From sequence record PQ330092.1: 64,000 bases of DNA; one strand, given 5' to 3'. The first letter of the stretch is position 1; each line of letters starts with the position of its first letter. The translations under genes and the position numbers were made by a program. The notes below the pieces were generated by a model. The model worked only from the letters and a program-made list of their open reading frames with translations, searched no databases and was not told the origin of the DNA. Shown one piece after another: positions 1-56,810 of the stretch.

Positions 1-175
<175 letters not shown>

Positions 176-1679: not shown

Positions 1680-1758
<79 letters not shown>

Positions 1759-1775
1759 CAAAATAAAGGTACACT

Positions 1776-7312: not shown

Positions 7313-8467
7313 TTATGCGTTGTAACCAACTATTACGACTGAGCAGTCAAGCGGTTCTACTACTTTAAGAATTACATTATCATCTTCATCCACTTGTATT
7401 TCACTATGAACTACATGATTGTCTGAAGAATATAATTGAACTTGTGGTAGTGCTTTACCATGTTCAGTTACTGGAACTGAGATAGAGTACATAGAGTCTT
7501 CACCGAGAACCCACTCACTTAAAGTATATTCTTTATGGAAAGGAGTAGTATGCAGTGTTTTTCCGATTATACTCAAAGAAACAGGTAAATTATCAGTTTG
7601 ATACACAGTAATATTACCTTCTGCGTCTACAGAAAGATCTACACCAACTTGATATAAGTCACCACTGTATGCTTGAAGTGCTAAGTACTGTCCACGATCA
7701 TGAACATCAAATGGAACAACCGCAGAAAATACACCTTCCGAAACAGGTTCAAATTGGGATAGAAGAACTGATGTAACAAAATCAATATCCTCACCACTTT
7801 CAAGAACATCAAATTCCACCACTTTAGTGTTATAATATGGAGAAGTGAGCGTAGCAGTACCTTTCCCTGATTGTGTGATAACATCAACTGGAATTGTAAA
7901 TGCATCATTAACAAATTGGGTAGTAAAGTATTCTGTCCCGTCTGGTAATACGATTGTTATTACCATACCGTTAGTATCAATTTCTGAACCAGTGTTGAAT
8001 AATTTACCACTAATTGAGTCATTACCAACAAATACTGGTGAAATGAGAATATTATCTATATCACGATCTATAATACCACATTCAGGTGTATACATATGAT
8101 ACAAGGTTTGTGAACTACCTAAAATTGTTTTATGTAGCATAAATTTATATACAAATCCAGTATCAGTTTCTTGTGGCTCTTCAGAATATCCACGAACAAA
8201 GAAACAATTTTTATTAATTTCACTTAATAGTTGGTCATTAGTTTTATTGTAATTTAATAGATAACCTTTATTATCTTTAGTTGTTATTTGTACTTTACGA
8301 TATATTATATTAGTTCTTGGATCAACTAAATCATATAATCTATGGCTTCTTTGGCGATAGATTCTAATATTTTTTAGTCTAGTTCCATCGTTGAGGATTG
8401 CACCATCAACAACATAACCACATTCACCAAACTTATAGCGTCCAGCCGCAGCAATTGACCTTGACAT
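7313..8467 (-). CDS. probable late/virion-associated protein (384 aa)
   Basis: GGAGG SD; TAAATA box upstream; two similar C-terminal ~55-aa modules. Confidence 0.6.
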   Translation of the reverse strand: MSRSIAAAGRYKFGECGYVVDGAILNDGTRLKNIRIYRQRSHRLYDLVDPRTNIIYRKVQITTKDNKGYLLNYNKTNDQLLSEINKNCFFVRGYSEEPQETDTGFVYKFMLHKTILGSSQTLYHMYTPECGIIDRDIDNILISPVFVGNDSISGKLFNTGSEIDTNGMVITIVLPDGTEYFTTQFVNDAFTIPVDVITQSGKGTATLTSPYYNTKVVEFDVLESGEDIDFVTSVLLSQFEPVSEGVFSAVVPFDVHDRGQYLALQAYSGDLYQVGVDLSVDAEGNITVYQTDNLPVSLSIIGKTLHTTPFHKEYTLSEWVLGEDSMYSISVPVTEHGKALPQVQLYSSDNHVVHSEIQVDEDDNVILKVVEPLDCSVVIVGYNA

Positions 8468-8583
8468 TTATCCCTCCATTGGTATAATTATTATAACGTA
8501 TTTATTATGCATATCCAAAAAATGAGCTTGACTGGTGTATGATTTGGTGTTATCATGTAGTGAATGAATAATGAGGTGTTTTT

Positions 8584-13263: not shown

Positions 13264-14229
13264 GTGAAAAAGCTTGATTTAAATACAATTGCCGAAGAAG
13301 TTCTGGATGAATGTTTTGCTAATGAAGAAGTCAACACACTAGAAGCCTTAGATTTCGTTGAAGATAAAGATGATAATGAAGGTAAAGTACAAAGCAGTTT
13401 CAAATATAATATTACACTTAAGCGACCACCAAATGTTTCCAATGAAGATCTAATTCGTGATATTCAAGCTGGTATCAATGTAAAGAAAAACACTGAACTG
13501 TTAGTTCGTTACAATTATGGACTGATTATTGATGTAGCAAGTAAATGTACTTGTTATATCCCATTTGAAGATAAGATTTCATATGGTGTTGAGGGGTTCA
13601 TGAGAGCACTAAAAACCTTTGATCTTAATAAGAATGTTAAGTTCATTACCTATGCTTCTTCTAGTATTTACATGACAGTCTATAACGAAAGTTCTGACGC
13701 TAACTATATGGTACACTTCCCACGTTATATGAGTGTTCATAAGATCAAAGTAAAAAGATTCTGTCAGGAATATATGCGTAAACATGGTGTTCGCCCAACT
13801 CCTGAAATAATCTCAGAGGGTACTGGGATTGAGATTCAGCATGTTAATAATTGTTTGTTATTTCAAAGCGAATACACTTCGCTGGATGCACCATTAGACG
13901 GTGTTACAGATGGTACATTAGGTGACATTATTCATTCACCTGCTTCTGATTTTAACCTCAATGTTGATAGTATCCGTGCACCTTTGCGTTATGCTATCAA
14001 TGAACTGACCAACGAATTGAGTACTAAAGAACGTGAGATTATCCAGCGTGTTCATGGTCTAGGTGAATATGAACCTGAAACGCTTCGTGAGATTGCTGAT
14101 AATGGTTTTGTTGATGATAATGGAAAATATGTTAAATCCCGTTCATCAATACATCGAAAGTACAGTGAAGCTATGCAAAAGCTTAAGAAGTTAGTACTTG
14201 CAAAAGGGTACGAATACGAAGATTTCTAA
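13264..14229 (+). CDS. sigma70-family RNA polymerase sigma factor
   Basis: Region 2 (YNYGLIIDVA..ISYGVEGFMRALKTFD..KFITYA), region 3 (RPTPEIISE..SLDAPL), region 4 (LSTKEREII..ETLREIA). Confidence 0.88.
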   Translation: MKKLDLNTIAEEVLDECFANEEVNTLEALDFVEDKDDNEGKVQSSFKYNITLKRPPNVSNEDLIRDIQAGINVKKNTELLVRYNYGLIIDVASKCTCYIPFEDKISYGVEGFMRALKTFDLNKNVKFITYASSSIYMTVYNESSDANYMVHFPRYMSVHKIKVKRFCQEYMRKHGVRPTPEIISEGTGIEIQHVNNCLLFQSEYTSLDAPLDGVTDGTLGDIIHSPASDFNLNVDSIRAPLRYAINELTNELSTKEREIIQRVHGLGEYEPETLREIADNGFVDDNGKYVKSRSSIHRKYSEAMQKLKKLVLAKGYEYEDF

Positions 14230-14234
14230 AGAAC

Positions 14235-14262
14235 AAGGGTTGGCTTATGCCAACCTTTTTTT
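14235..14262 (+). terminator. intrinsic terminator
   Basis: AAGGGTTGGC-TTAT-GCCAACCTTTTTTT. Confidence 0.85.
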
Positions 14263-14296
14263 ATGGGATGAAGTAAAAGTTTGTGATATAATTATC

Positions 14297-14786
14297 TTGT
14301 ACAATTCTGTTGGCATGATATTCATGTACCTGATCCACTCGAAAACGTAGAGGGCAGTTGAGCAGTCCGACAGTGCGAACAGCAAAAGAAACCCGTTAGA
14401 TGTGGGCATAGTTTGAACCCCTCACGGCAATGCGGCTGTATAAAGAACCACGTTAGGATAGCTGGTGGTTCCTTGATAGACATATAAGGATAACACCTTA
14501 CGAATTATCTAAGGGAGAGTTATCGAATTTTGTACAGGAAAGTTGCGTCCAAAATTTGAGTACTCACATTAAGTATTTGATTGCATAGATACTTAATGAA
14601 GATACACTATGTTTAAAAGTGTAGACCGTCATATGAAACTGAAGTAGAGAGAAACAGGATGACCCGCTTTCGCACTCTTTATGAGTAATCTTCAATGCAA
14701 TAGCTCTGATACCATCAGCGTCAAATTTCCCTCCTTGTGGGGGGAAGAAAAATCCCTTCCTCAAATCCCGTCAATATTAAAAGTCC
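14297..14786 (+). ncRNA. candidate large structured ncRNA (~490 nt, possibly two domains)
   Basis: Extended -10 TGaTATAAT at 14284-14292; closing stem TGTACAA/TTGTACA; many hairpins; no credible ORF. Confidence 0.55.
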
Positions 14787-14815
14787 TTGACAGTTATTAA
14801 TCATTCGCGTAGAAT
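14787..14815 (+). promoter_or_regulatory. sigma70-type promoter
   Basis: TTGACA-17-TAGAAT. Confidence 0.75.
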
Positions 14816-14879
14816 ACGTAGTATTAGAAGCGAACAGACATCTCGAAGAGATGGATGATTAACCATTAAGGAATATCAA

Positions 14880-15089
14880 ATGAATTCAGTAATCTTTTTA
14901 GTAGTCGCTTTCTCTGTTAATTCCGGTGTACAAATAACCCCAATGAATTCCATGAATCAATGCATAGCAGTACGTGATAGTACATACGAACAAGTAAACA
15001 AAGATATTTGGATTACAGTTAGTAAAGAACAAATGTGGTGTTACAATAGTAATACTAACACAAAGCTTATTGTAGGACAAACTCAATGA
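14880..15089 (+). CDS. hypothetical protein (69 aa)
   Basis: AAGGA SD. Confidence 0.75.
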   Translation: MNSVIFLVVAFSVNSGVQITPMNSMNQCIAVRDSTYEQVNKDIWITVSKEQMWCYNSNTNTKLIVGQTQ

Positions 15090-15317: not shown

Positions 15318-16106
15318 ATGAGCACTATAGATGAACTGATTCGACGGAATTCAAAATATTACCAACCATCAGAAATTGTAGGTAACATTACCAAATCAGA
15401 GTTTGGTCCAAATACTCGAAAACTCATTCATGTAATGTCACGTGATGGCTTTAAATGTGATTGTTGCGGTGAATCTAATGTAGTATTCACTTTACACAAG
15501 CACAGTACTAAAGATCGTTATAAATTCAGACCTTATGTACTTAAAGGGAAACGCCTTGTACGCATGACGTTAGACCATAATGTACTGGACTGTCTTCAGG
15601 GCGGTAATGATAAAGAGAACATGACTGCACTGTGTGAAGATTGTAACGCATTACGCCAGCATAAGTTTGCTGAATACAGTGAGTTTAAACACTGGTATCA
15701 TAACGCGGATCGTTCAATCGAGCCTGACGTTAACTACTGCTTCATTGAGTACATTAAGAATGCCAAAGATACATACATTCTTAAATCAATGTCACCTATT
15801 ACCGTGTTTCCTGAGAACCTATTCACTACATTAAAGAATAGTTTTATTGTGGGTGATATTGATGCATTCAAGTATTTTGACAAAGGTGCAAAACATTTTG
15901 AAATTCAATGTCTTAGTACTGCACTATGTGAACTCATTAAAATTTACATAAAAGAGTATTTGGGTATTGACAATGTACGTGTACCAGAGTATACTTTTTC
16001 TATTGAATTCGATTGTGAATCAATCAAAGAGTTTGGAATTCTTTTCAATAAACAAATAGAACTTGCAATTCAAAACGAAATCAAGTACTATACTACTAAC
16101 ATTTAA
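15318..16106 (+). CDS. HNH endonuclease-domain protein
   Basis: CDCCG..MTLDH..GGNDKENMTALCEDCN. Confidence 0.72.
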   Translation: MSTIDELIRRNSKYYQPSEIVGNITKSEFGPNTRKLIHVMSRDGFKCDCCGESNVVFTLHKHSTKDRYKFRPYVLKGKRLVRMTLDHNVLDCLQGGNDKENMTALCEDCNALRQHKFAEYSEFKHWYHNADRSIEPDVNYCFIEYIKNAKDTYILKSMSPITVFPENLFTTLKNSFIVGDIDAFKYFDKGAKHFEIQCLSTALCELIKIYIKEYLGIDNVRVPEYTFSIEFDCESIKEFGILFNKQIELAIQNEIKYYTTNI

Positions 16107-22511: not shown

Positions 22512-22703
22512 ATGTTGATTTATCAAAGTGATAATATTCGTGTTATGCAGCATCCCTACTTACAAATCTTTGATGTGCAGCAGTATATGGAAGGTGATGA
22601 CCCAAGAACCTATGGTCGTAAGTATGATTACTTCACTGTAAAGCAGTGTAAAAATATTAACGAAGTACGACAATTAGTTCAAGAACTTCAAAACAAAGGT
22701 TGA
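22512..22703 (+). CDS. hypothetical protein (63 aa)
   Basis: AAGGA SD before ATG 22512. Confidence 0.72.
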   Translation: MLIYQSDNIRVMQHPYLQIFDVQQYMEGDDPRTYGRKYDYFTVKQCKNINEVRQLVQELQNKG

Positions 22704-22729
22704 CTTCGGTCAGCCTTTTTTGTTATAAT
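22695..22729 (+). repeat. fused terminator-promoter element, copy 1
   Basis: AAAGGTTGAC-TTCG-GTCAGCCTTTTTT-GT-TATAAT. Confidence 0.85.
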
Positions 22730-25433: not shown

Positions 25434-25548
25434 TTTAACTTTGGGACAACCATTCTTATTATGATATAATGTTTTATGTCATTCGATATAAATGACAACG
25501 GAACTATAAATATTATAGTAAAATTTATCTCTTATAGGAGTTATAAAA

Positions 25549-25932
25549 ATGGTTGATAAATGGAATAAGAAAGATCCATCACATGATGTTGATATTTCTG
25601 GTCTAGACAATGCACATAAGCACAAGTATCTAGATTCACTAGGTCTTCTAAAACCAGACCAAAGTCTTGCACATGATCGTCCATCCCGTGAAAAAGCATT
25701 TAGCCTAGAATCACTAGGTCATGAGCTTAATCGTGTGTTTGAGGATCACCCAATCTATGTACGTGATATTATCGAGAAACTTAAAGTAACTCCTAAAGAG
25801 CACTTTAAAGCAACTGTACACTCTGCATTCCGTGCATTACATGAATCTCTAAAGAAAACTCACAATCTTCGTAAAATTCATGATGAAATCGTGAATGCAA
25901 TCGAAAGTGAAAAACATAAGTTCAAGAAGTAA
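25549..25932 (+). CDS. probable late protein, paralog of the N-terminal part of 26178..27455
   Basis: TATAAATA upstream; YLDSLGLL and SLES motifs. Confidence 0.7.
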   Translation: MVDKWNKKDPSHDVDISGLDNAHKHKYLDSLGLLKPDQSLAHDRPSREKAFSLESLGHELNRVFEDHPIYVRDIIEKLKVTPKEHFKATVHSAFRALHESLKKTHNLRKIHDEIVNAIESEKHKFKK

Positions 25933-25935
25933 TAA

Positions 25936-25972
25936 AAAGGGGTTGACTAAGGTCAGCCCTTTGTTGTATCAT
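25936..25972 (+). repeat. fused terminator-promoter element, copy 2
   Basis: GGGGTTGAC-TAAG-GTCAGCCCTTT..TATCAT. Confidence 0.8.
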
Positions 25973-26001: not shown

Positions 26002-26115
26002 ATGCAAGGTTTGAAATTTGTAGTTGCTGCACTCATCGCCGCAGTACTGGTTGGTGGTGTATTCTATGTAGTGGATCAAAAAGTAAATCCACCTGCACAA
26101 GAACAATCTAAGTAA
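26002..26115 (+). CDS. small membrane peptide (37 aa, below track threshold)
   Basis: GAGG SD; MQGLKFVVAALIAAVLVGGVFYVVDQK. Confidence 0.65.
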   Translation: MQGLKFVVAALIAAVLVGGVFYVVDQKVNPPAQEQSK

Positions 26116-26121
26116 CAAAAT

Positions 26122-26161
26122 AAGGTTGACTTCGGTCAGCCTTTTCTTTATACTATAAATA
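26122..26161 (+). repeat. fused terminator-promoter element, copy 3, with TATAAATA late box
   Basis: GGTTGAC-TTCG-GTCAGCC; TATACT; TATAAATA 26154-26161. Confidence 0.8.
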
Positions 26162-32755: not shown

Positions 32756-33169
32756 ATGAAGAAGTGTATCACGTGTAATATTGAAAAAGACATTAGTGAA
32801 TTTGGTATAAGAAAAGATACTGGGAAACATAGAAATACATGCAAAGGTTGTAGTAATATTACCAGTAAGAAAACCAGAAATAAAAAAACTGATGTCAAAA
32901 AACTTGAAGAAATCAAAAGAAAAAATAAAGATTTCATGACCAGAGTTAAATCATTTTATGGTTGTAGTATTTGTATGATGAAGTATCCAGAATGTTTAGA
33001 CTTTCACCATCTTGACCCTAATACCAAAGAACATACACCAAGTTCTATGTTCAGTAAAAGTCGAGATGTTATAAAAGATGAAATTCGAAAGTGTATGATT
33101 CTTTGTTCTAATCACCATCGCATGGTACATGCTGGTAGACTATGTTTAATTGAAAGAAAAAAGGGTTGA
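32756..33169 (+). CDS. HNH (homing-type) endonuclease
   Basis: CxxC pairs; CSIC..LDFHHLDP..CMILCSNHHRMVH. Confidence 0.85.
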   Translation: MKKCITCNIEKDISEFGIRKDTGKHRNTCKGCSNITSKKTRNKKTDVKKLEEIKRKNKDFMTRVKSFYGCSICMMKYPECLDFHHLDPNTKEHTPSSMFSKSRDVIKDEIRKCMILCSNHHRMVHAGRLCLIERKKG

Positions 33170-33195
33170 CTACGGTCAGCCCTTTTTGCTATAAT
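33160..33195 (+). repeat. fused terminator-promoter element, copy 6
   Basis: AAGGGTTGAC-TACG-GTCAGCCCTTTTT-GC-TATAAT. Confidence 0.85.
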
Positions 33196-34484: not shown

Positions 34485-35096
34485 ATGAAATTAGATGCAA
34501 AATTAGAAGAACTATTGAATACCAATAACTATGAACTTATCAATAAAGATGGGTGGAATTACCTAATTAATGATGATAATATCAAGTACAAATACTTATC
34601 AGATGATGTTATTGAATTTAAACTAATCGACAATTTGTTTGAACATAATATTCTTAGATACAACTTCAATAATAACGAATTTTCGATTGCACAAAAAGTA
34701 AATGTTTCACATCCAGTATGTGGTTTATATATGGTCCCTGATGACAGCGACGAAATTTTTAGTATATTTCCAAACTTGCATTTATTGAATCGTAAAAATA
34801 CCATTTCATATATGAATGATTTGTATTCAGGTATAATCTTCTATCCAAACGGTGATTGGGAAGGTACGTTTGATGTGGATGTTAATGATCGTATTTCTTA
34901 TATCGGAGGTGTATACCAGCATCAAACTGTAGAAAGCAATGAAAACGGTCATGTATCTAGTAATAGTGAAATTATTACTAAAAAATTCACTAACTATCAA
35001 GAGTTTGAAGCATATCTATTCCAATTAGAATCGGTTGAATCTTTCTCTGACTCAGTAGGGTCGGTTGTGAATCTATTACGTGACTACCATAAATGA
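34485..35096 (+). CDS. hypothetical protein (203 aa), distant EExxFQ family
   Basis: AAGGT SD; EAYLFQLESV. Confidence 0.75.
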   Translation: MKLDAKLEELLNTNNYELINKDGWNYLINDDNIKYKYLSDDVIEFKLIDNLFEHNILRYNFNNNEFSIAQKVNVSHPVCGLYMVPDDSDEIFSIFPNLHLLNRKNTISYMNDLYSGIIFYPNGDWEGTFDVDVNDRISYIGGVYQHQTVESNENGHVSSNSEIITKKFTNYQEFEAYLFQLESVESFSDSVGSVVNLLRDYHK

Positions 35097-35104
35097 ATAA
35101 AAAT

Positions 35105-35140
35105 AAAGGGTTGACTTCGGTCAGCCTTTTTTGCTATAAT
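35105..35140 (+). repeat. fused terminator-promoter element, copy 7
   Basis: AAAGGGTTGAC-TTCG-GTCAGCCTTTTTT-GC-TATAAT. Confidence 0.85.
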
Positions 35141-35403: not shown

Positions 35404-36514
35404 ACAGTATTATTTAAATGAAGATGGTGAAAAAGTTTATTTTCATGAAGAACTTGGTATGCGTTTTGAATGGATGAAGCCTGAAGATATAAAAAGGGTT
35501 TCAAAAGGACTCACTGCTAAGGATCATGTTGATGACATAGAAGCAAAATTAAAAAACAAAGATATTGACAATATTACTATTATTGGATTATCAGTTAAAT
35601 CATCACGTGAGTTTGGTAAAAACGGAAATAGTAATAACAATTTACTGATTATGTATAATGGGGTATTGTATGATAATTATAAAATAACTGGTTTAAAAAC
35701 AAAGCTTGAAAAAATAACAAACAATAAATTCAAGCCATCATTTACCTATACAGATGAAAATTATTATTACTATGTAACCAAATTGGGTTCTCTTGAGGAA
35801 AGAGGATGCTATATATATGAAAATGAACATTTAGACAATGGGATAATGTCATATATTAAATTCACATATTCCGATGGATTTACACAACCACGAAGAATAA
35901 ATGATATAATTACAAAAAAATCAATGAACGTTAGATATTTTATAACACCTGAAATGCGTGAAACAATTGCTAACACACGCTGTAATGAACTAGGATATAC
36001 ATTAAAAGAAGTTTACAAGAAATCAAATGGTCGTTATTATGTAAAATATATATGTGATAAAGGACACGAGTGTAATCAAGACTATTATGCGTTTACTAGT
36101 AAACAAGCACAAAAATGTGGATGCTGTTCCCAATTAGAAACACACTCATTTGGTCATAATGATTGTAAAGAGTTTTTGAGAGGAATGTTTGTTACTGAAA
36201 GAGAGAAAACATTTCCTGATTTAAAAAATAAATCAAAACTTCCATATGATTTTTATATTCGTGATATTAATACGTTATTTGAATATGATGGTAGTAATCA
36301 CTTTGAAGAACGTGAATCAGGATGGGGAAACGGACTTATGAGGAAAAAACACGATAAAATCAAAACAGAATACGCAATAAAAAATGGATATAACTTCATT
36401 CGTATTGCGTATTATGAAGACCATATTGGAGCATTGAAATCTTTCCTTAAACTCATTGAAGAGAATCCAGGAAAGCAAATCGTGCAGATCTATGGTGAAG
36501 TACAAATTATCTAA
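35396..36514 (+). CDS. Vsr/DUF559-like (Hef-type) putative homing endonuclease
   Basis: YxCxxGH..CxxC Zn motif; LPYDFYI..FEYDGSNH..DKIKTEYAIKNGYNFIRI. Confidence 0.7.
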   Translation: MFEQYYLNEDGEKVYFHEELGMRFEWMKPEDIKRVSKGLTAKDHVDDIEAKLKNKDIDNITIIGLSVKSSREFGKNGNSNNNLLIMYNGVLYDNYKITGLKTKLEKITNNKFKPSFTYTDENYYYYVTKLGSLEERGCYIYENEHLDNGIMSYIKFTYSDGFTQPRRINDIITKKSMNVRYFITPEMRETIANTRCNELGYTLKEVYKKSNGRYYVKYICDKGHECNQDYYAFTSKQAQKCGCCSQLETHSFGHNDCKEFLRGMFVTEREKTFPDLKNKSKLPYDFYIRDINTLFEYDGSNHFEERESGWGNGLMRKKHDKIKTEYAIKNGYNFIRIAYYEDHIGALKSFLKLIEENPGKQIVQIYGEVQII

Positions 36515-36518
36515 AACA

Positions 36519-36554
36519 AAAGGGTTGACTTCGGTCAGCCCTTTTTGCTATAAT
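36519..36554 (+). repeat. fused terminator-promoter element, copy 8
   Basis: AAAGGGTTGAC-TTCG-GTCAGCCCTTTTT-GC-TATAAT. Confidence 0.85.
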
Positions 36555-40906: not shown

Positions 40907-41310
40907 CAAATACAGTACTGGCAACTCCACCGTCTGTAATATATTGTCCAGTACTGTAAATTTGTATACCATCGGTTAAGTAAGTTCTGTATAAAGTTGC
41001 TGTAACATATACGTTATTCATATTCATCTCTATTGGTAGTACACATTTGGTATAGGCTGAGACATCTGTTTGTGTACCTATACCTAATTGACCTGCGTTA
41101 TCGCCTGTGTTATAACCAGTTGCGTAAACACCTAATGAAGTTATAATATGATTAGAAAAATATGAATAACCCAAACTCTTGAGATTCTCTACTGTACAAC
41201 GTACCATCTGACATAAGGGCAAAAACTGTCGTATCAGATGAAGCTATTTTTGTAACAGAAGGTTGTATGTTCTTTTTTGATGATGTGATAATTCTTCGAA
41301 AGGGTAGCAT
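40887..41310 (-). pseudogene. internally deleted RCC1-like cassette
   Basis: MLPFRRII.. N-terminus (stops at 41152) joined out of frame to a C-terminal blade ending DSPF like 49566..50729. Confidence 0.7.
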
Positions 41311-41381
41311 TGTATCCTCCAAATGTAAATCGTTATTATATTTAGGACAAAAAAATGCCAGTACAAAATACTGGCTTTATT

Positions 41382-42587
41382 TTATATACCACGACTGGGT
41401 ATTTTATATAATTGAAATTTAGTGTAATAATCAGAAACTGTTGTACCTGTCGCTTGTGGGATATAGCCACTCAAATAAACATCCCCTTGATTATCCATAT
41501 ACACATTTGTACATTCACTTGGACAGAATAACTCGATGCTGCCAACTTTAGGTGCATCAACTGGAACTACAAATGTAGTACTTGATGTGGTATTACCGCG
41601 ACCGAGCCTACCATATGTGTTTATACCACACATATAAAGTGAATTGTTAGTTTTAACCGTAAGCCCACCATATGTTAATGAATTTGATTTCATTTCCATA
41701 TTATCTGATATTGGTAGAGTGGAGATTGTAGATAATACTGTCCCTGATGAAGCGGCTGAACTATTACCCAAGTTACCTTCCGATTGAATCCCACTTGCAC
41801 GAACTGTATATGTATTATTCGTGTTGTGTTTAGATACAACCCATGATGCACTCCCACCAAGTTCATAATGTATAACAGTATTGTTGGCTAATGCACCCAT
41901 TTGTGTCCATACTCTAATGTTAGTTTCACCATTACTTATACCAAGTGAACCCCATGTGTTTTGACCAGTGACCCAAAGTGTTTTATCAATTTTCTGCACA
42001 ATCACTGCACTTGAACCTGTTTTTACACTATCCACATTCGTATTAATTGAAGTAAATGTTGATAATCTTGTGGTTGTGTTATTACCAAAATATCCCTGTG
42101 TATTGGCCCCCATTCCATATAGCGTACCATTTTGAAGTAAAACAAAAATACCCTCCCCTACAATTTGAATGTCCTTAATTTGCGACAATTGTGTTGCATT
42201 GAATACTGATGTAAAATATGAAGTACAATCAGTATAAGTACTGACAGTACTTAATCCTGTACCAATAGCTCTACCTACGCCACTGTAATAAAATTTATTA
42301 TCTTCGGTTTGGATTAAATTAAAAGAACCTTGGGCTGTTCTAAAACGTTTTACATTTTGGTATATTAAAGCCCACTCTTTTACTTTCGCATTAGGTACAC
42401 CATTTCCGAATCCATAGTTTTGTGAACTAGTTCCACCTATACCCATTAAGTCTCCATTTTTATATAATAGTAAGAGTGCTGTTGCTGGAATAACTGACGC
42501 ACTATAACCATTGTAAATAAAGATTTCTTTCACTTCAGGAACTTTCATTTTATTTGCGTATTTTATCATCCTTGGAAAAGGTAACAT
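41382..42587 (-). CDS. RCC1/BLIP-II-like beta-propeller, MLPF cassette (401 aa)
   Basis: GxNxxGxLG repeats; MLPFPRMIKY. Confidence 0.8.
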   Translation of the reverse strand: MLPFPRMIKYANKMKVPEVKEIFIYNGYSASVIPATALLLLYKNGDLMGIGGTSSQNYGFGNGVPNAKVKEWALIYQNVKRFRTAQGSFNLIQTEDNKFYYSGVGRAIGTGLSTVSTYTDCTSYFTSVFNATQLSQIKDIQIVGEGIFVLLQNGTLYGMGANTQGYFGNNTTTRLSTFTSINTNVDSVKTGSSAVIVQKIDKTLWVTGQNTWGSLGISNGETNIRVWTQMGALANNTVIHYELGGSASWVVSKHNTNNTYTVRASGIQSEGNLGNSSAASSGTVLSTISTLPISDNMEMKSNSLTYGGLTVKTNNSLYMCGINTYGRLGRGNTTSSTTFVVPVDAPKVGSIELFCPSECTNVYMDNQGDVYLSGYIPQATGTTVSDYYTKFQLYKIPSRGI

Positions 42588-42658
42588 AAAATCCTCCTTT
42601 ATTCATTATACTATATTTAATCAAAAAGAAAAGCCAGTGTTAAGTACTGGCATAAAAT

Positions 42659-43828
42659 CTAAGCAGAAGGCATATTCTTCATCTTAATAAATGAAAATTG
42701 TGTACCAGTATTTGTGGTTTGATCAGTAAAATATGAATTACTCCCAGCCCAGTACAATTCATTATTGACTATACAATATATAACAGAACTCGAACTCTGT
42801 GAATACACACGACTTATATTTGATTGTTCTACTCCAGTACTGAACTGAACTACCCCCAACTGTGAACTTGGTATTACATTAGTTGGTCTACCTAAACCGT
42901 TAACACCCGCACCACCACCACATGTATATACTCCAGTACTATCAGTTGATATATTAACATAACCATTTCCGGCATTTTCAAATAGTATTTCACTGGGAAC
43001 AACACCAAATCCTGTAAGATCTATTTTCCTGAATGTAGTATAAACCGTAGAACCGCCAACACCTCTTCCACCATAATCATTCGAACCAGCCATATAGATA
43101 CTATATCCAGAACTTCCTAAACATAATAACTGTACGTTGTCATATAATATTTGCATAGATATAACGTTATCAGGAATACTCAATACCGTAAAAGTAGTTA
43201 AAGAAGAACTTCCAATATTACTACCAACCGATGTTCCACATCTGTAGTACTTACCGCCTTTTATATAATGGAACGATGAACCGCCTAACTTATGTGCTCC
43301 TATTTCACTTACCCCAGTATCTATAAGAATGGGAGATACAACTTTGTTATTAACACCTAACTCAGATCTACTGTTCATACCGAACCCATATAAACGACCA
43401 TCTAACATCAATATTAGTGTACTACCTGACGTACCTGCTGACGTAAATTCTATATTCTTTATTTGCGACACGTCAATACCTACAAATAATGAAGTTACTT
43501 CAGTCCAGTTAACATATGAACCACTAGCCCCAAAATATCCACCCATGTATAGTCCGGCACAATATAACTTATTATCAACAGTCTTTATTAATGTACCGGA
43601 TACACACGCCCAAAAATCATCAACTTCATAGGGTACATGTACCCAACCACCTAATACATCACTAGCATCCCCTGTACCTAATTTATAGTTCGAACCAGAA
43701 CCACGCATGTACATATTCCCTGTACTATAAAGTAATCCGACATGTAATTGACTACCATCCAATTTCTTTATTTCAGGAAGAGTTGGTTTAATATTTCCGT
43801 ACTTTAACATTCTTCCAAAAGGTAACAT
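42659..43828 (-). CDS. RCC1-like beta-propeller, MLPF cassette (389 aa)
   Basis: MLPFGRMLKYGNI; GxNxxxxLG repeats. Confidence 0.8.
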   Translation of the reverse strand: MLPFGRMLKYGNIKPTLPEIKKLDGSQLHVGLLYSTGNMYMRGSGSNYKLGTGDASDVLGGWVHVPYEVDDFWACVSGTLIKTVDNKLYCAGLYMGGYFGASGSYVNWTEVTSLFVGIDVSQIKNIEFTSAGTSGSTLILMLDGRLYGFGMNSRSELGVNNKVVSPILIDTGVSEIGAHKLGGSSFHYIKGGKYYRCGTSVGSNIGSSSLTTFTVLSIPDNVISMQILYDNVQLLCLGSSGYSIYMAGSNDYGGRGVGGSTVYTTFRKIDLTGFGVVPSEILFENAGNGYVNISTDSTGVYTCGGGAGVNGLGRPTNVIPSSQLGVVQFSTGVEQSNISRVYSQSSSSVIYCIVNNELYWAGSNSYFTDQTTNTGTQFSFIKMKNMPSA

Positions 43829-43838
43829 AATTTTCTCC

Positions 43839-45018
43839 TTAAATTTGTGGCAATTGGTATTCAGTTAAAGTCCATGTACCAACAACTGTCCCTACTGGAG
43901 ACATACCAGTGTAGTATAATTTCCCATTCACATATGCAAATAATGCATTGTCATTCGCAGCAACCAACGATGTTGACGGATCATAAACTACAGAATTTGG
44001 AAATTGTGCTTGGACGAAAATTGAAGCATTATTAGATGAATTGTTACCAAGCTGTCCATAATTATTATACCCTGTTCCAAAAATACGACTTCCATTTCTA
44101 TATAATAATCCCCTAGGATTTTGTGAATATGTTTGTATAAATTCAAAATCGGAAACATTAGTTAATTGTAAATAAGTACTTTGTGGAGTTAAAGATATCT
44201 TATTAGTATTAGATAGAACACCATTTCCTAATTGTCCGTGAATTTTGTGACCCTACACCATATAGCGGATAAGTATTATCTACATTAAGAACTATACCCA
44301 ACATATTGTTATATGAAATTATATCAACGGGGTACTGGCCTGTAGGAAAACTATACTTTGTCCAACTCGTCAAAGTATCAGTAGCAGAACCAGTTAACAA
44401 TGTACCAGTACTAGTTTTACCACATCTCCATGCTGAATTATCATTTTTAATTATCCAAGTTGGACTATTGAAAAATGAACTAACCTTTTTAACATTAATA
44501 TTAACCTGTGTAAATGATGTAAGTGTAGATGAACTACTACCCAACTCATAGGTTGAATTATCACCTATTGCGTAAAGAACACTATCATTTGTTAGTAAAA
44601 ACATATTACGAACATTTGGATATATCTCCTTGATATTATCCACATTAAAACCTGAAAAATAAGACGTACAATCAACAAATGTAGTACTTTGAACTGCACT
44701 AGATGTACCAGTCCAAAGGTTCCAACCTGCATAATAAAATTTATTATCATTGGTCTGAACTAAGCTATATGAAGCATTCCTTGTGCACCAAAAATTTTTC
44801 ACATTTTGCATTAAGCGAACCCATTTGGTCTGTGTTGTCGTATTGCCTAGTCCGAAAATACCAGCATTGTTGCCGCCTATACCCCACAAATCACCGTTAC
44901 TATACTGTAGCATCAATGTATTGTTGGTGAACGCCGATGGTGCTTGCATTTTAATTACATTAGCTGATGGTGCAGGTGCTATATTCCCGTACTTAACCAT
45001 TCTTGCAAAAGGTAACAT
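43839..45018 (-). pseudogene. RCC1-like cassette gene with a +1 frameshift at about 44243-44246
   Basis: Removing one A gives GSQIHGQLGN.. to TAA 43839 (392 aa), colinear with 52046..53233. Confidence 0.8.
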
Positions 45019-45099
45019 AAATCCCTCCTTTATTCATTATACTATATTTAATCAAAAAGAAAAGCCAGCACTCGGTACTGGCTTTTTGATATACATACT

Positions 45100-46287
45100 T
45101 CATATACCCAATTTAATTGGCTCATATTGAAATAGTGTAGGATTGGAGTCAGGGTAGTTCACCACTTCTGTTCCTGGATATGCACCATACCCGTTGAATG
45201 CACCTGAACCATATACTATACCATCGGTGCTAATTAATGCAGAATAATTGTTTCCCATACCAACTGACAGTACTGTCATCGTTGATGTACCTTCTGGTAG
45301 GTTTATAACCTGCTCTCTGAAACTATTACCAGAAGCTGTCGGAACACTAAATCCTAATCTGCCATTGCTACTATTAGTAGAACCAGTTGCATAACGTGTA
45401 CCTGTACTCAAATCCTGAATCCAACACGATGGTCCTTGACCCTCTGGATCAGTCCAGTATCTAAAATTAGCACTATCGTATGTAAAGGGAAGAACTGCTA
45501 ATCTGTTAGTTCCCTGGGAACCTGAAGTATACGTCAATCCATACAATGGAGTAAGCAAACCACGAACATATAATCCAGTACTCTTGGTGTATAACAATGA
45601 GCCGCCTGAACCATCCGAATTGATTGAAAGGATATCAGTATCACCTATATTTGTGAATACCTTAATATCAGATGATCCAGATGTTAATCCATAATTACCA
45701 CAGAACCAAGCTGTGTTATCGTTCTTTAACACAACAACTGTTTCATAAGAACAGGTTACCACATCTTTACAGTTAGTATTGATTTGTACAAATTCACCTA
45801 TCTTCCCCGTTAGGGTATTATTACCAAACTGTCCACGGTTATTTGAACCCATAGCATATAATATTCCAGTACTATTCAATGCGTATATTGTACTAGTTCC
45901 TGGTGTTTCACGGCGTGTAATTGCAATCTTTGTAATAGTTCCTAATGTGCTGAAAAATGAACTCACATCAACGAAACTTGTTTGTGAACCTAATCCAAAT
46001 TGACTTAAATTCCCCGCCGCCATATATCTTCCATCATTCATTAGACATATAGTATATGCTGGATGACAGTATATCATAGCTACATTTATAAGAACTAAGC
46101 TAGGCACTCCACCAACAATCGAAGTGTTGGGTGTACCAAAACGATATTCATTGTTTGACCCATATGCAAATAACTTACCATCAGTAGTTAAAAATAAATG
46201 CCCTAATCCATAAGTATTAATCTTGCGGATACCAGCGGGTGGTGGTATCTTATTCCCGTACGTTAACATTCTCCCAAAAGGTAACAT
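45100..46287 (-). CDS. RCC1-like beta-propeller, MLPF cassette (395 aa)
   Basis: MLPFGRMLTYGNK; GSNNRGQFG. Confidence 0.8.
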   Translation of the reverse strand: MLPFGRMLTYGNKIPPPAGIRKINTYGLGHLFLTTDGKLFAYGSNNEYRFGTPNTSIVGGVPSLVLINVAMIYCHPAYTICLMNDGRYMAAGNLSQFGLGSQTSFVDVSSFFSTLGTITKIAITRRETPGTSTIYALNSTGILYAMGSNNRGQFGNNTLTGKIGEFVQINTNCKDVVTCSYETVVVLKNDNTAWFCGNYGLTSGSSDIKVFTNIGDTDILSINSDGSGGSLLYTKSTGLYVRGLLTPLYGLTYTSGSQGTNRLAVLPFTYDSANFRYWTDPEGQGPSCWIQDLSTGTRYATGSTNSSNGRLGFSVPTASGNSFREQVINLPEGTSTMTVLSVGMGNNYSALISTDGIVYGSGAFNGYGAYPGTEVVNYPDSNPTLFQYEPIKLGI

Positions 46288-46295
46288 ATTCCCTC

Positions 46296-47471
46296 CTATT
46301 CCGGTAAAATCATTTTCTTCATTTTAACTTGTTGTGTACCTGCACTCTGTTCCTGGAACATAGAACCACTACCACACCAGTACACCTCATTTGCCCCCAC
46401 TAATGCGTATAACACACCGGAACTACCCTGAACTGAAAACGCCTGAACAGCCGGTGCAGTAACGGAATCCTCAAATAGTACTGGGTAGTACGCAGTTCTA
46501 GGTGTCGATGAAGTTATTTCTCTACCAAGAGCAACACCATTACCACAAGTATATAATTTGCCACCCTGAGTCATCGCAATCATATGAGCATTAATACAAG
46601 AATTATTCAGCGAACCCACATCTGGTACAATACCATAAATTGTAGGTGTCATACTAAATGGACTCATTATTATACTGGTGTCTCCATAACCAATACCTAA
46701 AGTATAATCCGTGTTTTGTCCAGCACTATACACTCTAATAGTACCATTATATGAAGTTAGTACTGACGTCGCATTTGTCGTACATGCAATACCCAGTACT
46801 GAACCAAATATATCTGAACTTACTGTGAATGTAGATAAACTAGAAGAGCTTGTTCCTAGGTTGTATCTAGCATTGCTACCACATCTGTAGTACTGACCGT
46901 TTTTCACATAATGAAACGCCGCTGCACGGTCTGTGCCTGCAATTAAAGTAACTCCGGTGTCAATCTTAATAGGTGTTGATTGGATTCCAGAAACGCCTAA
47001 TACACCAGCACCATTACGACCTATACCATATAAGTCCCCGCTACTTAACAAAATTAATATAGCACCATTGGTAGTTGTAGACTCGGTAGAAGCTATATTT
47101 TGTATAGTACTAAGTCCTGGAATTGAAGATAATATTGTTGTAATATTAGTCCACCCAGGACCGCTGGTTGCAACTACACCAACATAACCCATCTGACCAG
47201 CTAAGTATAATTCACCACTTGTAGTAAGTATAATAGTCGCGTAAGTTAAGCACCAAACATCAGCAACACTATATGGACATTTAATCCACCTATCCTGAAC
47301 GAATCCAGTACTGTCATTTCCTAACTTATATTCCACACCAGCACCACGTAGATATAAATTCCCATTATCGAATAACATACCAACGTGACTAATGGAAGTA
47401 CTAATCTTTCGCACTACACTGGGAGCAGGTGCAATATTCCCGTACTTAACCATTCTTGCAAAAGGTAACAT
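46296..47471 (-). CDS. RCC1-like beta-propeller, MLPF cassette (391 aa)
   Basis: True start 47471; closest to 42659..43828. Confidence 0.8.
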   Translation of the reverse strand: MLPFARMVKYGNIAPAPSVVRKISTSISHVGMLFDNGNLYLRGAGVEYKLGNDSTGFVQDRWIKCPYSVADVWCLTYATIILTTSGELYLAGQMGYVGVVATSGPGWTNITTILSSIPGLSTIQNIASTESTTTNGAILILLSSGDLYGIGRNGAGVLGVSGIQSTPIKIDTGVTLIAGTDRAAAFHYVKNGQYYRCGSNARYNLGTSSSSLSTFTVSSDIFGSVLGIACTTNATSVLTSYNGTIRVYSAGQNTDYTLGIGYGDTSIIMSPFSMTPTIYGIVPDVGSLNNSCINAHMIAMTQGGKLYTCGNGVALGREITSSTPRTAYYPVLFEDSVTAPAVQAFSVQGSSGVLYALVGANEVYWCGSGSMFQEQSAGTQQVKMKKMILPE

Positions 47472-47541
47472 ATTCCCTCCTTTATTCATTATACTATATT
47501 TAATACAAATAAGAAAGCCAGTACTTTGTACTGGCATAATT

Positions 47542-48684
47542 TCAATAAACATCCCAAGGTAATGGTGTCTTCCTAAATCCATACCTGGTTGTGCTCGCAC
47601 CATCGCCAGCAATGTATCGACCGATGCCACATTGGTATAACTCTGTACTACTACATATAGCACCACCAATAGTACCACTACCCCACTGAATTATATTAGA
47701 ATATGTTATTGGTAAATCACTACATTTAGTATATACACCAACGGTAGCAGCACCACTAATACCACCAAACATGCTTCGGTTAGCACCAGTGTAATATATA
47801 CCATCTGGACTCATAAATGCAGAGGTGTACGTTGTACTACAATCCACTGGACTTCTTATAGTATTAAGATCGCCAGGGTATGTTCTAGCAGCATATACGT
47901 AAACATTACCATCAGTAGTAATACCATTACCCAACTGACCACTGTTCTGACCACCACACGTAACTAACGATGCAGAACCAGAAACAATTGCAGTAGCATT
48001 ATACGAAGTACCCATTGCAATAGAAGCACCAGACAATAGTTTTGGTGTAACGATAGCTGTTGTATTACCCTGGCCTAATTCACCATTTGTGTTTCGTCCC
48101 CATGCGTATATAGAAGTCGTATCCAATCGACATAGTACTGAACCATAACTAAACGTATATCGCATGTCATTTACAGCAGAAGGCAAATTAACCTTAGTTG
48201 CAACACTAATAACACCACCAGTAACACCACTGTTTGCGTTCATGTTACGACCATATGCATATAAAGAACCATCTGAAGTTTTAATATGCATCATACCATC
48301 TGTGCAATATAATGCATCGATGCTATCCACCGCAACCGGACCCATACTGGCAGTTATATCGGTCCACCCCAGAGTAGTAGTACTAGAAATTAAGTTATTT
48401 CCTGCGTAAAGGATTCTATTATTATTAGTAACTACCACTGTATATCTAGCAGTAACTCCAATTAATCGAACATCAGTATATATCTTAGACCACGCACCTA
48501 GTGAATTGGTATTTGCATCCAAAAAGCCTAACTGCCCATCTGTATTGTATCCAATACCCCATGCATCACCTGCACTGTCCAATAACACTTCATGTGAAAA
48601 GCCAATCTTAAAATCTTTTATTGTAGGAACTACCGGAACTGGTGCAATATTCCCGTACTTAACCATTCTTCCAAAAGGTAACAT
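47542..48684 (-). CDS. RCC1-like beta-propeller, MLPF cassette (380 aa)
   Basis: True start 48684; GYNTDGQLG, WGRNTNGELGQG. Confidence 0.82.
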   Translation of the reverse strand: MLPFGRMVKYGNIAPVPVVPTIKDFKIGFSHEVLLDSAGDAWGIGYNTDGQLGFLDANTNSLGAWSKIYTDVRLIGVTARYTVVVTNNNRILYAGNNLISSTTTLGWTDITASMGPVAVDSIDALYCTDGMMHIKTSDGSLYAYGRNMNANSGVTGGVISVATKVNLPSAVNDMRYTFSYGSVLCRLDTTSIYAWGRNTNGELGQGNTTAIVTPKLLSGASIAMGTSYNATAIVSGSASLVTCGGQNSGQLGNGITTDGNVYVYAARTYPGDLNTIRSPVDCSTTYTSAFMSPDGIYYTGANRSMFGGISGAATVGVYTKCSDLPITYSNIIQWGSGTIGGAICSSTELYQCGIGRYIAGDGASTTRYGFRKTPLPWDVY

Positions 48685-48755
48685 AATTCCCTCCTTATTC
48701 ATTATACTATATTTAATACAAATAAGAAAGCCAGTATCAAGTACTGGCCTATATT

Positions 48756-49493: not shown

Positions 49494-49565
49494 AATTCCC
49501 TCCTTTATTCATTATACTATATTTAATACAAAAAGAAATGCCAGTATCAAGTACTGGCATTCTTT

Positions 49566-50729: not shown

Positions 50730-50801
50730 ATTTCCCTCCTTTATTCATTATACTATATTTAATACAAAAAGAAAAGCCAGTATTAAGTACTGGCGAAATT
50801 A

Positions 50802-51992: not shown

Positions 51993-52045
51993 AATTCCCT
52001 CCTTTATTCATTATACTATATTTAATACAAATAAGAATACCAGTA

Positions 52046-53233: not shown

Positions 53234-53302
53234 AATTCCTCCTTTATTCATTATACTATATTTAGCACAAAAGAAAAGCCAGTATCAAGTACTGGCCTTA
53301 TG

Positions 53303-54412: not shown

Positions 54413-54485
54413 AAATCCCTCCTTATTCATTATACTATATTTAATACAAATAAGAAAAGCCAGTATCAAGTACTGGCATATCAAA

Positions 54486-55634: not shown

Positions 55635-55682
55635 AAATCCCTCCTTATTCATTATATCATATTTACCCCATAAAGAAAACCC

Positions 55683-55711
55683 TTGACATCCTTTCAGTAC
55701 TGGTGTACTAT
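55683..55711 (+). promoter_or_regulatory. sigma70-type promoter for the microprotein array
   Basis: TTGACA-17-TACTAT with CAGTACTG in the spacer. Confidence 0.72.
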
Positions 55712-55736
55712 AGAAGGAATATAAGGAGAACTACAC

Positions 55737-56164: not shown

Positions 56165-56165
56165 T

Positions 56166-56800: not shown

Positions 56801-56810
56801 AGAGAATACT

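Follow-up and report, generated by a model that had tools for sequence, protein, structure and literature searches.

A doubly pseudoknotted non-coding RNA of roughly 500 nt, from an apparently undescribed family, is predicted in RaK2/121Q-type jumbo phages and in some enterobacterial prophages and islands

The stretch of DNA analysed here (the window, 64,000 nt from record PQ330092.1) comes from an Asteriusvirus, i.e. a jumbo coliphage of the 121Q/PBECO4 type. The gap behind its sigma-factor gene begins with the intrinsic terminator of that gene, which is followed by an extended -10 promoter and then by a region with no conserved open reading frame (Table 1). The G+C content is 0.40-0.455 across 14200-14500, as opposed to about 0.32 in the flanks. 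The first-pass annotation had proposed a structured RNA of about 490 nt at this position, and this observation is confirmed: on sequence evidence, positions 14284-14860 of the + strand are a non-coding RNA gene with a promoter of its own. The conserved unit extends beyond the end proposed earlier (14786), to about 14857, which adds two conserved hairpins.

Table 1. Features of the RNA locus and its surroundings (window coordinates; paired strands are separated by a slash)
Feature	Position	Strand	Description
Sigma-factor gene	13264-14229		
Terminator of the sigma-factor gene	14235-14265	+	10-bp stem (14235-14258) followed by a T-run; upstream limit of the RNA unit; annotated as a terminator in phages G17 and UE-S1
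Promoter	14265-14292	+	GGGATG box followed by the extended -10 TGTGATATAAT (TGn at 14284-86, TATAAT at 14287-92; TGATATAAT at 14284-14292); predicted start near 14299
5' leader	14297-14327	+	TTGTACAA (14297-14304, can pair with 14530-14536), conserved ..CTGnTTGG motif, hairpin CATGA/TCATG (14314-18/14322-26)
Domain 1	14328-14520	+	Invariant joining strands include GAAACCCGUUAG, CACGGCAAUGCGGC, UAUAAAG, GAUAGACAUAUAAGG and CUAAGGGAG
P1	14335-40/14350-54	+	
P2	14362-66/14372-76	+	
P3	14379-83/14435-39	+	
P4	14393-96/14424-27	+	
P5	14445-50/14466-71	+	GAACCAC/GTGGTTC
P6	14485-88/14497-500	+	TAAGG/CCTTA
Movable peripheral module	14525-14560	+	..UUUGUACA-GGAAAG-UUGCGUCC-AAAAUUUGAG
Domain 2 (pseudoknotted core)	14565-14726	+	P7 to P11, PK1 and PK2, then ..AUCAGCGUCAAA
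P7	14567-79/14586-98	+	Hairpin whose 6-nt loop forms PK1
PK1	14580-86/14695-701	+	
P8	14603-07/14619-23	+	
PK2	14628-32/14659-63	+	Crosses P9 and P10
P9	14640-44/14690-94	+	TGAAG/CTTCA
P10	14647-51/14667-71	+	
P11	14674-76/14684-86	+	
3' hairpin and tail	14727-14786	+	P12, UUCCCUCC/GGGGGGAA (14729-35/14740-47); conserved tail CAAAUCCCGUCAAUAUUAAA with a second CGUCAR box
Consensus promoter	14787-14815	+	TTGACA-17-TAGAAT; overlapped by the 3' extension in this copy
3' extension	14804-14857	+	Hairpins A and B
Hairpin A	14804-08/14830-34	+	Inner stem 14813-17/14821-25, ACGUAGU loop (family loop AACGnAGUGA)
Hairpin B	14839-44/14848-53	+	CAUCUC-GAA-GAGAUG
HNH endonuclease gene	15318-16106		
Promoter of the same extended -10 type	25441-25470		Precedes a protein gene
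tRNA genes	94-168 and 1686-1759		Nearest is 12.5 kb from the RNA

Ninety distinct full-length homologues were collected, 60-72% identical to the window copy; in their alignment 84 columns are invariant, mostly in the joining strands, and 144 are at least 90% conserved. The longest ATG open reading frame in these 90 sequences has a median length of about 42 aa (17-98 aa), lies on either strand and at varying positions, and the insertions and deletions are not in multiples of three, which speaks against a protein-coding gene. A TGnTATAAT-type extended -10 element was found upstream of nearly all of the 45 copies inspected (40 of 45 by the pattern, and near-variants such as TGTCCTATAAT in the rest), usually preceded by GGGAC, GGAAC or GAAAC, and the prophage copies read TGTCCTATACT. 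As a general promoter motif of the phage, AACGAAGTGA was rejected, since six near-matches occur in the 64 kb against 4.2 expected; in other words, it is specific to the cassette.

The secondary structure was derived with RNAalifold and by counting pairs in an alignment of 31 sequences. A pairwise covariation scan without a helix requirement was swamped by correlations between paralogue clades and was replaced by a stacked-helix scan. The resulting model has 14 helices and 65 pairs, including two pseudoknots, and is 98.7% paired, as opposed to 38.8-45.5% when the partners are slid. Forty-two pairs change on both sides, against 6-14 in the slid controls, and the covariation score is 0.517 against at most 0.093, a value that 0 of 500 shuffles reach. 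The six helices of domain 1 are 91-100% paired and 20 of their 28 pairs change on both sides. In domain 2, PK1, PK2 and P9 are paired in 88-90 of the 90 sequences, with 2-5 pair types per varying position (the two outer PK2 pairs never vary). PK1 joins a hairpin loop to a strand about 110 nt downstream, a pairing that could be within one molecule or between two, and PK2 is a 5-bp helix that crosses two others. We note that single-sequence folding is not better than chance (z = -1.5 on both strands), i.e. the statistical weight comes from the covariation. Conserved G-U pairs occur in P7, P8 and P10. Conserved G-U pairs (UG:25, GU:26, UG:22 and UG:22 of 31) would be A-C mismatches on the other strand, and the promoters, the internal terminators and the terminal terminators all lie on the + strand as well.

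Of the ten stems proposed in the first-pass annotation, seven have covariation support, one is only partly supported, one is mis-paired and one is unproven. The stems upheld are the leader hairpin GCATGA/TCATGT (14313-18/14322-27), P5, P6, the 12-13-bp hairpin P7 (present in 31 of 31 copies), GTCAT/ATGAC, which is a pseudoknot strand, and TTCCCTCC/GGGGGGAA (P12). Every copy has the leader motif AAyyCTGnTTGr followed by a hairpin whose sequence varies, although this was judged by eye and not counted. The pairing of P12 is kept only through G-U/G-C swaps, with no pair changing on both sides; GGGGGGAUGAAA is nearly invariant while its 5' arm varies through G-U pairs. The proposed closing stem TTGTACAA/TTGTACA is plausible, as it reads TTGTAAAA/TTTTACAA in the 121Q copy-3 paralogues (homologues L003 and L057) and TGTACAAC/GTTGTA in homologue L095, but it is not general across the family, and a global RNAduplex test of pairing between leader and module was uninformative (z near 0), so that only these individual compensated examples stand. 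TGAAGAT/ATCTTCA was not upheld, since the covarying partner of CTTCA lies in P9. In ATTTGAG/CTCAAAT only TTT/AAA is widely kept, with no compensatory change seen. The two-domain picture is broadly right, but domain 2 is pseudoknotted rather than closed by the stems proposed earlier.

The copies also differ in their peripheral parts. The movable module lies between the two domains in some paralogues, whereas in others it lies inside the P11 hairpin after ACCCGCUUUCG, and homologues L003 and L065 have it in both places. The two CGUCAR boxes change in step with each other: they read CGUCAA/CGUCAA here, CGUCAG/CGUCAG in most copies and CUUCAA/CUUCAA in RaK2. The 5' CCUGAU, GAUGAG and GACCGUUG were tried as pairing partners of these boxes, and none fits across the clades. 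An intrinsic terminator is inserted after the first box in roughly a third to a half of the copies (31 or more of 89), but not in the window copy. Conservation continues beyond this terminator, which a simple single-product gene does not explain. Hairpins A and B follow most of the 83 distinct downstream flanks, bacterial ones included, with stems that look compensated by eye (CATTC/GAATG, CATAC/GTATG, CAATC/GATTG; not counted). Some copies end at their own terminator about 60 nt after hairpin B.

The family does not match any catalogued RNA. A scan of the whole window against Rfam 15 at gathering score returned only two tRNAs, and a scan of positions 14100-15000 at E<=10 returned eight chance-level hits of at most 19.7 bits, mostly on the terminator; ARAGORN found no tmRNA. 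RNase P was considered because, by eye, ACAGAGCAACCCGCUUUCG resembles CR-V and GGAAAGUUGCGUCC resembles CR-I, but the order of the elements differs, GGAAAG is not conserved in the family, the P4-like pairing does not form and no model matches. A hammerhead ribozyme, whose invariant core is CUGANGA ... GAAA flanking stem II, was also rejected: the lookalike (C)AGAUGAG-P2-CGAA reads GTTGAG in this copy and in four others, i.e. the essential A is not conserved, and the U is absent as well. A K-turn (box C/D-like) reading of CUGA...GAUGAG fails because the required bases vary between copies. No description of the element was found in the searchable literature. The related jumbo phage PA5oct has four ORF-free, promoter-driven regions of 236-619 nt that were defined as lncRNAs by RNA-seq, two of them highly expressed throughout infection (PMC7318152), but ncRNA001 and ncRNA002, the two that were compared, show no similarity to this family under nhmmer at maximum sensitivity (best E = 1.1).

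Each RaK2/121Q-type jumbo genome carries four dispersed, co-oriented and diverged copies at conserved map positions; in 121Q they sit at 90.3, 192.8, 247.5 and 326.7 kb. Only the copy described here follows the sigma gene, 55 nt behind its terminator in Asteriusvirus. The other three lie upstream of a DNA methyltransferase, after a structural-protein gene, and between endonuclease VII and minus-strand baseplate-hub genes. Full-length copies are also found in bacterial chromosomes, i.e. in an island at ffs of E. coli strain LR-29-1 (nhmmer E = 1e-109) and in nine GTDB genome contigs (E = 1e-70 to 1e-86), of which eight are assigned to Enterobacterales and one, of 2.8 kb, is binned as Clostridium sp. 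The hosts of the prophage-like elements, in which the RNA occupies the region from integrase to cI, include Citrobacter, Enterobacter, Serratia and others. In the two elements examined (Citrobacter, homologue L077, and Enterobacter, homologue L087) the RNA lies between a large serine recombinase and a cI-like repressor; a search for records encoding two of the ORFs of such elements found none. In the E. coli island only the RNA is shared with the phages. On the tree the bacterial copies fall in at least three places, some of them inside jumbo-phage clades, and the pairing is kept in all of them.

These data only partly support the earlier interpretation. A novel phage RNA on the + strand, starting at the extended -10 promoter, is supported, but the suggested link to the sigma switch is not. 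The phage group does encode its own sigma factor, next to which this copy lies, and the RNA could in principle act like 6S by titrating a polymerase holoenzyme during the early-to-late switch. However, no sigma gene was found among the annotated or scanned neighbours of the other three copies in the same genome, of the syntenic copies in other genera or of the bacterial copies whose surroundings were examined. Moreover, the consensus is multi-branched and pseudoknotted, not the mostly double-stranded rod with a central open-promoter-like bubble that defines 6S, and no 6S model matches. We consider this reading very unlikely.

A cis-acting leader is another reading, which we regard as unlikely too. 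In this view the RNA would modify the polymerase that makes it, like the processive antiterminators HK022 put and EAR, or otherwise control the genes downstream, so that four such elements would head four long transcription units. All jumbo copies point in the same direction as most genes, each follows a promoter, conserved sequence continues past the internal terminator, which sits directly after the folded core where an antiterminator would be needed, and in many jumbo copies the downstream ORF starts 10-30 nt after the 3' extension, so that read-through into it is possible. On the other hand, copy 4 lies between, and is followed by, minus-strand genes, the prophage copies examined converge on cI or are followed by unrelated ORFs, and the E. 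coli island copy is followed by 700 nt without an ORF. No downstream gene family is shared between copies, unlike the single co-oriented gene family or pathway expected of a riboswitch, and some copies end at their own terminator. The put and EAR elements are likewise promoter-proximal folded phage or operon RNAs, with a comparable placement of an intrinsic terminator just downstream, but they are 70-120 nt long and always head an operon, whereas this RNA is five times larger and pseudoknotted, and several of its copies face convergent genes.

A role at replication origins is likewise improbable on present evidence. Here the folded transcript would form a persistent RNA-DNA hybrid that primes leading-strand synthesis, in the manner of ColE1 RNA II or T4 oriF/oriG, which are promoter-driven RNAs of about 0.5 kb whose fold decides a DNA-level event; the four copies would be four origins, T4 also having several per genome, and the bacterial islands would be satellites that borrow the origin of the helper phage. 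The four co-oriented copies at conserved positions in genomes of about 350 kb, their promoters, an invariant G6 run, the position of one copy beside baseplate-hub genes (as in T4 oriE) and the small integrative island that carries only this cassette from the phage are in accordance with this view. Against it, no GC-skew inflection was seen at the element in the window, which is a weak test, and no iterons were noticed and no AT-rich unwinding element lies next to it. Ordinary prophage-like elements with integrase, cI and cro carry the RNA in the accessory region and not in a replication module, and an R-loop model does not require the covarying tertiary pseudoknots.

It is also improbable that the cassette is a selfish mobile RNA, i.e. 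a ribozyme-bearing or intron-like element whose structure is conserved for its own mobility. The cassette alone moves between unrelated replicons, is multi-copy, contains the CGUCAR box as a direct repeat and has HNH endonuclease genes near two copies (one in the window, and 121Q gp513). Nevertheless, it is not inserted in a gene, so that there are no exons to restore, it matches neither the group I nor the group II intron models of Rfam, it has its own promoter, and the copy number is fixed at four, at syntenic sites across genera, which shows no ongoing spread.

What the comparison establishes, in our view, is an independent gene for a large non-coding RNA of a previously uncatalogued family, with a core of about 490 nt (14299-14786) or about 560 nt with the 3' extension, a promoter of the type read by host sigma-70 RNA polymerase that is placed to start + strand transcription near 14299, and a sequence constrained to fold into two domains. 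Expression, the ends of the RNA, its abundance and its function are inferred, as there are no transcript data for this phage group and no partner, ligand or activity has been identified. Somewhat more likely than not, the RNA acts in trans as a stable, compactly folded structural RNA, i.e. a protein- or ligand-binding particle, a decoy or possibly a catalyst, and not through antisense pairing or as a switch for a neighbouring gene; its position behind the sigma gene would be incidental. In this view it is an accessory cassette of roughly 0.6 kb that has moved several times between lytic RaK2/121Q-type phages, which keep four diverged copies, and temperate elements and islands of Enterobacterales, which keep one, in the integrase-proximal 'moron' region. 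Such a distribution is typical of genes used in host takeover or in phage-host and phage-phage conflict, and an accessory factor in phage-host conflict is the probable role. We note, however, that four paralogues kept at fixed positions across genera would also suit a position-dependent, cis-acting role.

The closest comparison is with the ROOL and GOLLD RNAs, as a general kind and not as homologues. The size class is the same (about 0.5-0.8 kb), many unpaired nucleotides are conserved, there are pseudoknot-type long-range pairings, and both are carried by phages and prophages as stand-alone genes with no dedicated protein partner. However, there is no match to their Rfam models, they occur mainly in Firmicutes and others as opposed to Enterobacterales and their jumbo phages, and they are frequently adjacent to tRNA genes, whereas the RNA in the window is not and no tRNA gene is annotated beside the other three 121Q copies. 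The four paralogues per genome are a further difference. OLE RNA is likewise a highly conserved, complex bacterial RNA of roughly 600 nt, which works as a ribonucleoprotein, but it is chromosomal, restricted to anaerobic Firmicutes and has dedicated protein partners encoded beside it, and its model does not match here. More tentatively, the family may be a new class of large pseudoknotted RNA that works without a dedicated protein, either as a self-assembling RNA particle or as a catalytic or ligand-sequestering RNA. Lytic jumbo phages, with four specialised paralogues, and temperate elements would then trade it as a weapon or shield in phage-host conflict, and the chromosomal copies might act as decoys against the jumbo phages that carry the same RNA.

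New bacterial or phage RNA classes of about 500 nt with this much conserved tertiary structure are rare. Earlier examples such as RNase P, tmRNA, OLE and the IscB guide RNA (first catalogued as the HEARO motif) turned out to be catalysts, RNP cores or guides, while for ROOL and GOLLD only the structure is known so far. The present family makes an attractive subject, since it occurs in E. coli phages that grow on K-12 (Sharanji, slurp01), the four natural paralogues and the prophage versions provide built-in comparisons, and the exchange between lytic and temperate elements points to a portable function. The RNA also fills four of the largest unannotated gaps in every RaK2/121Q-type genome, across which several GenBank records annotate spurious 'hypothetical proteins'.

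The sequence under study belongs to an Asteriusvirus, a jumbo coliphage of roughly 350 kb and of the 121Q/PBECO4 type, and the region is 100% identical to phages vB_EcoM_E9.1 and JP4 and 99% identical to 121Q. The gene preceding the region is annotated as the phage sigma-70-family factor in phages G17 and UE-S1, and it is followed by an intrinsic terminator. Between this terminator and the next ORF there are 650 nt without a credible ORF. Several deposited GenBank genomes (E9.1, JP4, ELP-22, SHEFM2K, the SD-series and WPEC3/5) nevertheless annotate 3-5 "hypothetical proteins" across this non-coding RNA, and these are very likely false gene calls.

The first-pass annotation had proposed a structured non-coding RNA in this gap, and this observation holds. 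The extended -10 element is where it was described, the region is richer in G+C (0.40-0.455) than its flanks (about 0.32), and a consensus promoter lies at its downstream side (see table). On the other hand, folding of this single sequence is not informative, as the MFE z-score is -1.47 on the + strand and -1.57 on the - strand. In other words, the case rests on comparative data.

Positions of the features in the window and of the RNA copies in other genomes
Sequence	Position	Feature
Window	94-168 and 1686-1759	Two phage tRNA genes, Asn-GTT and Thr-TGT, 12.5 kb upstream of the RNA
Window	13264-14229	Gene annotated as sigma-70-family factor in G17 and UE-S1
Window	14235-14258	Intrinsic terminator
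Window	14284-14292	Extended -10 element TGATATAAT
Window	14628-32/14659-63	PK2, helix that crosses two others
Window	14640-44	TGAAG, the partner of CTTCA
Window	14695-14701	Strand paired with the P7 loop (PK1)
Window	14787-14815	Consensus promoter TTGACA-17-TAGAAT
Window	14804-34	3' hairpin of the type with the loop AACGnAGUGA
Window	14839-53	3' hairpin of the CAUUC-GAA-GAAUG type
Window	14880	ATG of the next ORF
Window	15318-16106	ORF corresponding to the gene whose 121Q homologue is called an HNH endonuclease, about 460 nt downstream of the RNA cassette
Window	22680-22729, 33146-33195, 35091-35140, 36505-36554	Recurring cassette AAGGGTTGACTTCGGTCAGCCCTTTT-TGyTATAAT
Window	25441-25470	Promoter of the same type in front of a protein gene
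Window	25930-25965 and 26112-26140	Hairpins similar to those of the recurring cassette
Window	about 41000-60000	GC skew turns negative
121Q	90.3, 192.8, 247.5, 326.7 kb	RNA copies; the copy at 90.3 kb is the orthologue of the window copy
Serratia BF	30, 175, 259, 335 kb	RNA copies
CBB	32, 174, 258, 336 kb	RNA copies
GAP32	35, 178, 262, 341 kb	RNA copies
Yen9-04	25, 174, 260, 335 kb	RNA copies
L065 (E. coli LR-29-1, NZ_AP027515.1)	8000-8548	RNA copy with its promoter
L065	8550-9257	About 700 nt more without any annotated gene, following the RNA in the E. coli island

A blastn search at low stringency found the region in 62-71 phage records, exclusively in the RaK2/121Q clade. The hosts are Escherichia, Salmonella, Serratia, Erwinia, Pectobacterium, Cronobacter, Yersinia, Xanthomonas and Klebsiella. 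Each record has 3-5 matching places, except the Klebsiella (RaK2-type) records, in which blastn finds a single 35-nt place. Homologues were then collected by three pattern scans of IMG/VR, one of GTDB genomes and one of metagenomes, and were filtered with an nhmmer profile. This resulted in 113 full-length hits and 90 distinct sequences of 402-591 nt, which, outside the orthologues of the window copy, are 60-72% identical to it. In the alignment 84 columns are invariant and 144 are at least 90% conserved. RaK2 itself has a diverged full-length copy (E = 1.7e-37) at a site syntenic with 121Q copy 2.

The structure was investigated by applying RNAalifold to 31 sequences, which predicted 63 pairs, 37 of them with compensatory changes. 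We added three elements, i.e. the local P7 hairpin (12-13 bp in 31 of 31 copies), the crossing helix PK2 and the pairing of the P7 loop with a downstream strand (PK1), and counted the resulting model of 14 helices and 65 pairs. In this model 98.7% of the cells are paired, as compared to 38.8-45.5% when the partners are slid by 1-3 columns. Forty-two pairs change on both sides, against 6-14 in the slid controls, and the covariation score is 0.517, against at most 0.093 in the slid controls; 0 of 500 shuffles reached the observed score. In the alignment of 90 sequences PK1, PK2 and P9 are paired in 88-90 of the 90, and varying positions show two to five pair types, whereas the two outer pairs of PK2 never vary. 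Four positions hold a conserved G-U pair which would be an A-C mismatch on the other strand, and together with the promoters and terminators this fixes the + strand.

Of the stems listed in the first-pass annotation, six are confirmed by comparison with the homologues. The proposed closing stem TTGTACAA/TTGTACA is plausible, as it is compensated in three homologues, the 121Q copy-3 paralogues L003 and L057 and the sequence L095. TGAAGAT/ATCTTCA is the wrong pairing, since the true partner of CTTCA is a TGAAG elsewhere in the RNA, and ATTTGAG/CTCAAAT is unproven.

On the 5' side, nearly every copy has an extended -10 element of the TGnTATAAT type (TGTCCTATACT in the bacterial copies), usually behind a GGGAC, GGAAC or GAAAC box. 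The same promoter type drives a protein gene in the window, so that it is an ordinary promoter class of this phage. In the whole window TGnTATAAT occurs 19 times against 10.2 expected, 16 of these on the + strand, and several sites are preceded by GGGACA- or GGAAC-like boxes, which suggests a phage-specific upstream promoter element. A further arrangement recurs in the window, in which a terminator hairpin carries a TTGAC (-35-like) sequence in its stem and is followed directly by an extended -10; it looks like a combined terminator and promoter between genes. In the RNA cassette the promoter is followed by a conserved leader, made of AAyyCUGnUUGr and a variable hairpin.

On the 3' side, the conserved unit continues beyond the end proposed in the first-pass annotation and includes two more hairpins. 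Between a third and a half of the copies, but not the one in the window, carry an intrinsic terminator that is inserted between the first CGUCAR box and the C/G hairpin, and some copies also have a terminator about 60 nt after the last hairpin. The internal terminator and the abutting ORFs favour an alternative reading in which the RNA would be a cis-acting leader or a processive antiterminator; we consider this unlikely, although it is the strongest of the alternatives. The two CGUCAR boxes change together, i.e. they read CGUCAA/CGUCAA in the window copy, CGUCAG/CGUCAG in most copies and CUUCAA/CUUCAA in RaK2, and no partner was found for them. Finally, a peripheral module occupies either of two positions in different paralogues.

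Each jumbo genome has four copies, on the same strand and at conserved map positions. The flanking genes of the four are unrelated to each other: the window copy is next to the sigma factor, and the others lie by hypothetical proteins, upstream of a DNA methyltransferase; by a structural protein, upstream of a Dps-like protein; and between endonuclease VII and minus-strand baseplate-hub genes. The sigma-gene neighbourhood is therefore one of four and is incidental. The first-pass interpretation is thus only partly supported: the RNA is novel, but the suggested functional link to the sigma factor is not supported, and we regard it as very improbable. The four dispersed and co-oriented copies would also suit an origin-priming RNA. 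The prophage location speaks against this reading, as does the GC skew, a weak test, which shows no change at the RNA locus, so that this possibility remains doubtful. One HNH endonuclease-like gene lies downstream of the window copy and another (121Q gp513) upstream of copy 3, but this is probably coincidence because these genomes carry many such genes.

An unexpected finding was a full-length copy with its own promoter in two of 5,426 complete E. coli genomes (NZ_AP027515.1, strain LR-29-1, and NZ_CM130020.1; nhmmer E = 1e-109 for the LR-29-1 copy). In LR-29-1 it is found in a roughly 10-kb island between ffs and ybaA, which also carries a tyrosine integrase split by IS3, hypothetical genes, an mSLOG-DUF4326 / DUF488 / dual-OB trio and a resolvase. 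Only the RNA cassette of this island resembles phage DNA, and it is 80.6% identical to the 174.5-kb copy of Serratia phage BF. Nine GTDB genome contigs also hold full-length copies; they come from Citrobacter amalonaticus, Enterobacter chinensis, Serratia fonticola, Serratia sp., Silvania, Buttiauxella, two other Enterobacteriaceae and one probably mis-binned contig. In the Citrobacter and Enterobacter elements the order is ppdD/hofB host genes, a large serine recombinase, the RNA, a cI-like HTH-S24 repressor on the opposite strand and then a Ner/Cro-like wHTH protein, which places the RNA in the accessory "moron" position of a temperate element. The Serratia fonticola copy instead lies next to ParB-like nuclease genes.

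The RNA is not protein-coding, it matches no Rfam family, and it is not a tmRNA. It is not a hammerhead either, because core bases vary between copies. It is not homologous to ncRNA001 or ncRNA002 of phage PA5oct, the only experimentally seen lncRNAs in a related phage. No description of it was found in the literature searched, although a large catalogue of unnamed viral RNA candidates (PMC10690425) could include it anonymously. We conclude that this is a new, widespread family of large pseudoknotted RNAs, which is more than the first-pass annotation had supposed.

What the analysis establishes is a promoter-equipped + strand RNA gene under strong structural constraint, as read from sequence, and the mobility of the cassette; expression and function are inferred. 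The RNA probably acts in trans, as a folded particle that would bind a protein or ligand, or as a decoy or a catalyst. This is suggested by the facts that it has no constant neighbour, that it sometimes faces convergent genes, that it sometimes has its own terminator, and that it is carried in accessory regions of very different elements. Its kind is closest to ROOL and GOLLD. We hold this reading to be somewhat more likely than not.

On a tree of the 90 sequences the bacterial copies fall in at least three places, two of them inside jumbo-phage clades, and one 349-kb phage contig has copies inside the mainly bacterial clade. The cassette has therefore moved repeatedly, and base pairing is kept wherever it landed. 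A selfish RNA element was also considered but seems improbable. On the same tree the four Asteriusvirus paralogues cluster together, whereas in the Eneladusvirus, CBB, GAP32 and Yersinia phages the copies cluster by map position, which implies gene conversion or re-amplification in the 121Q lineage.
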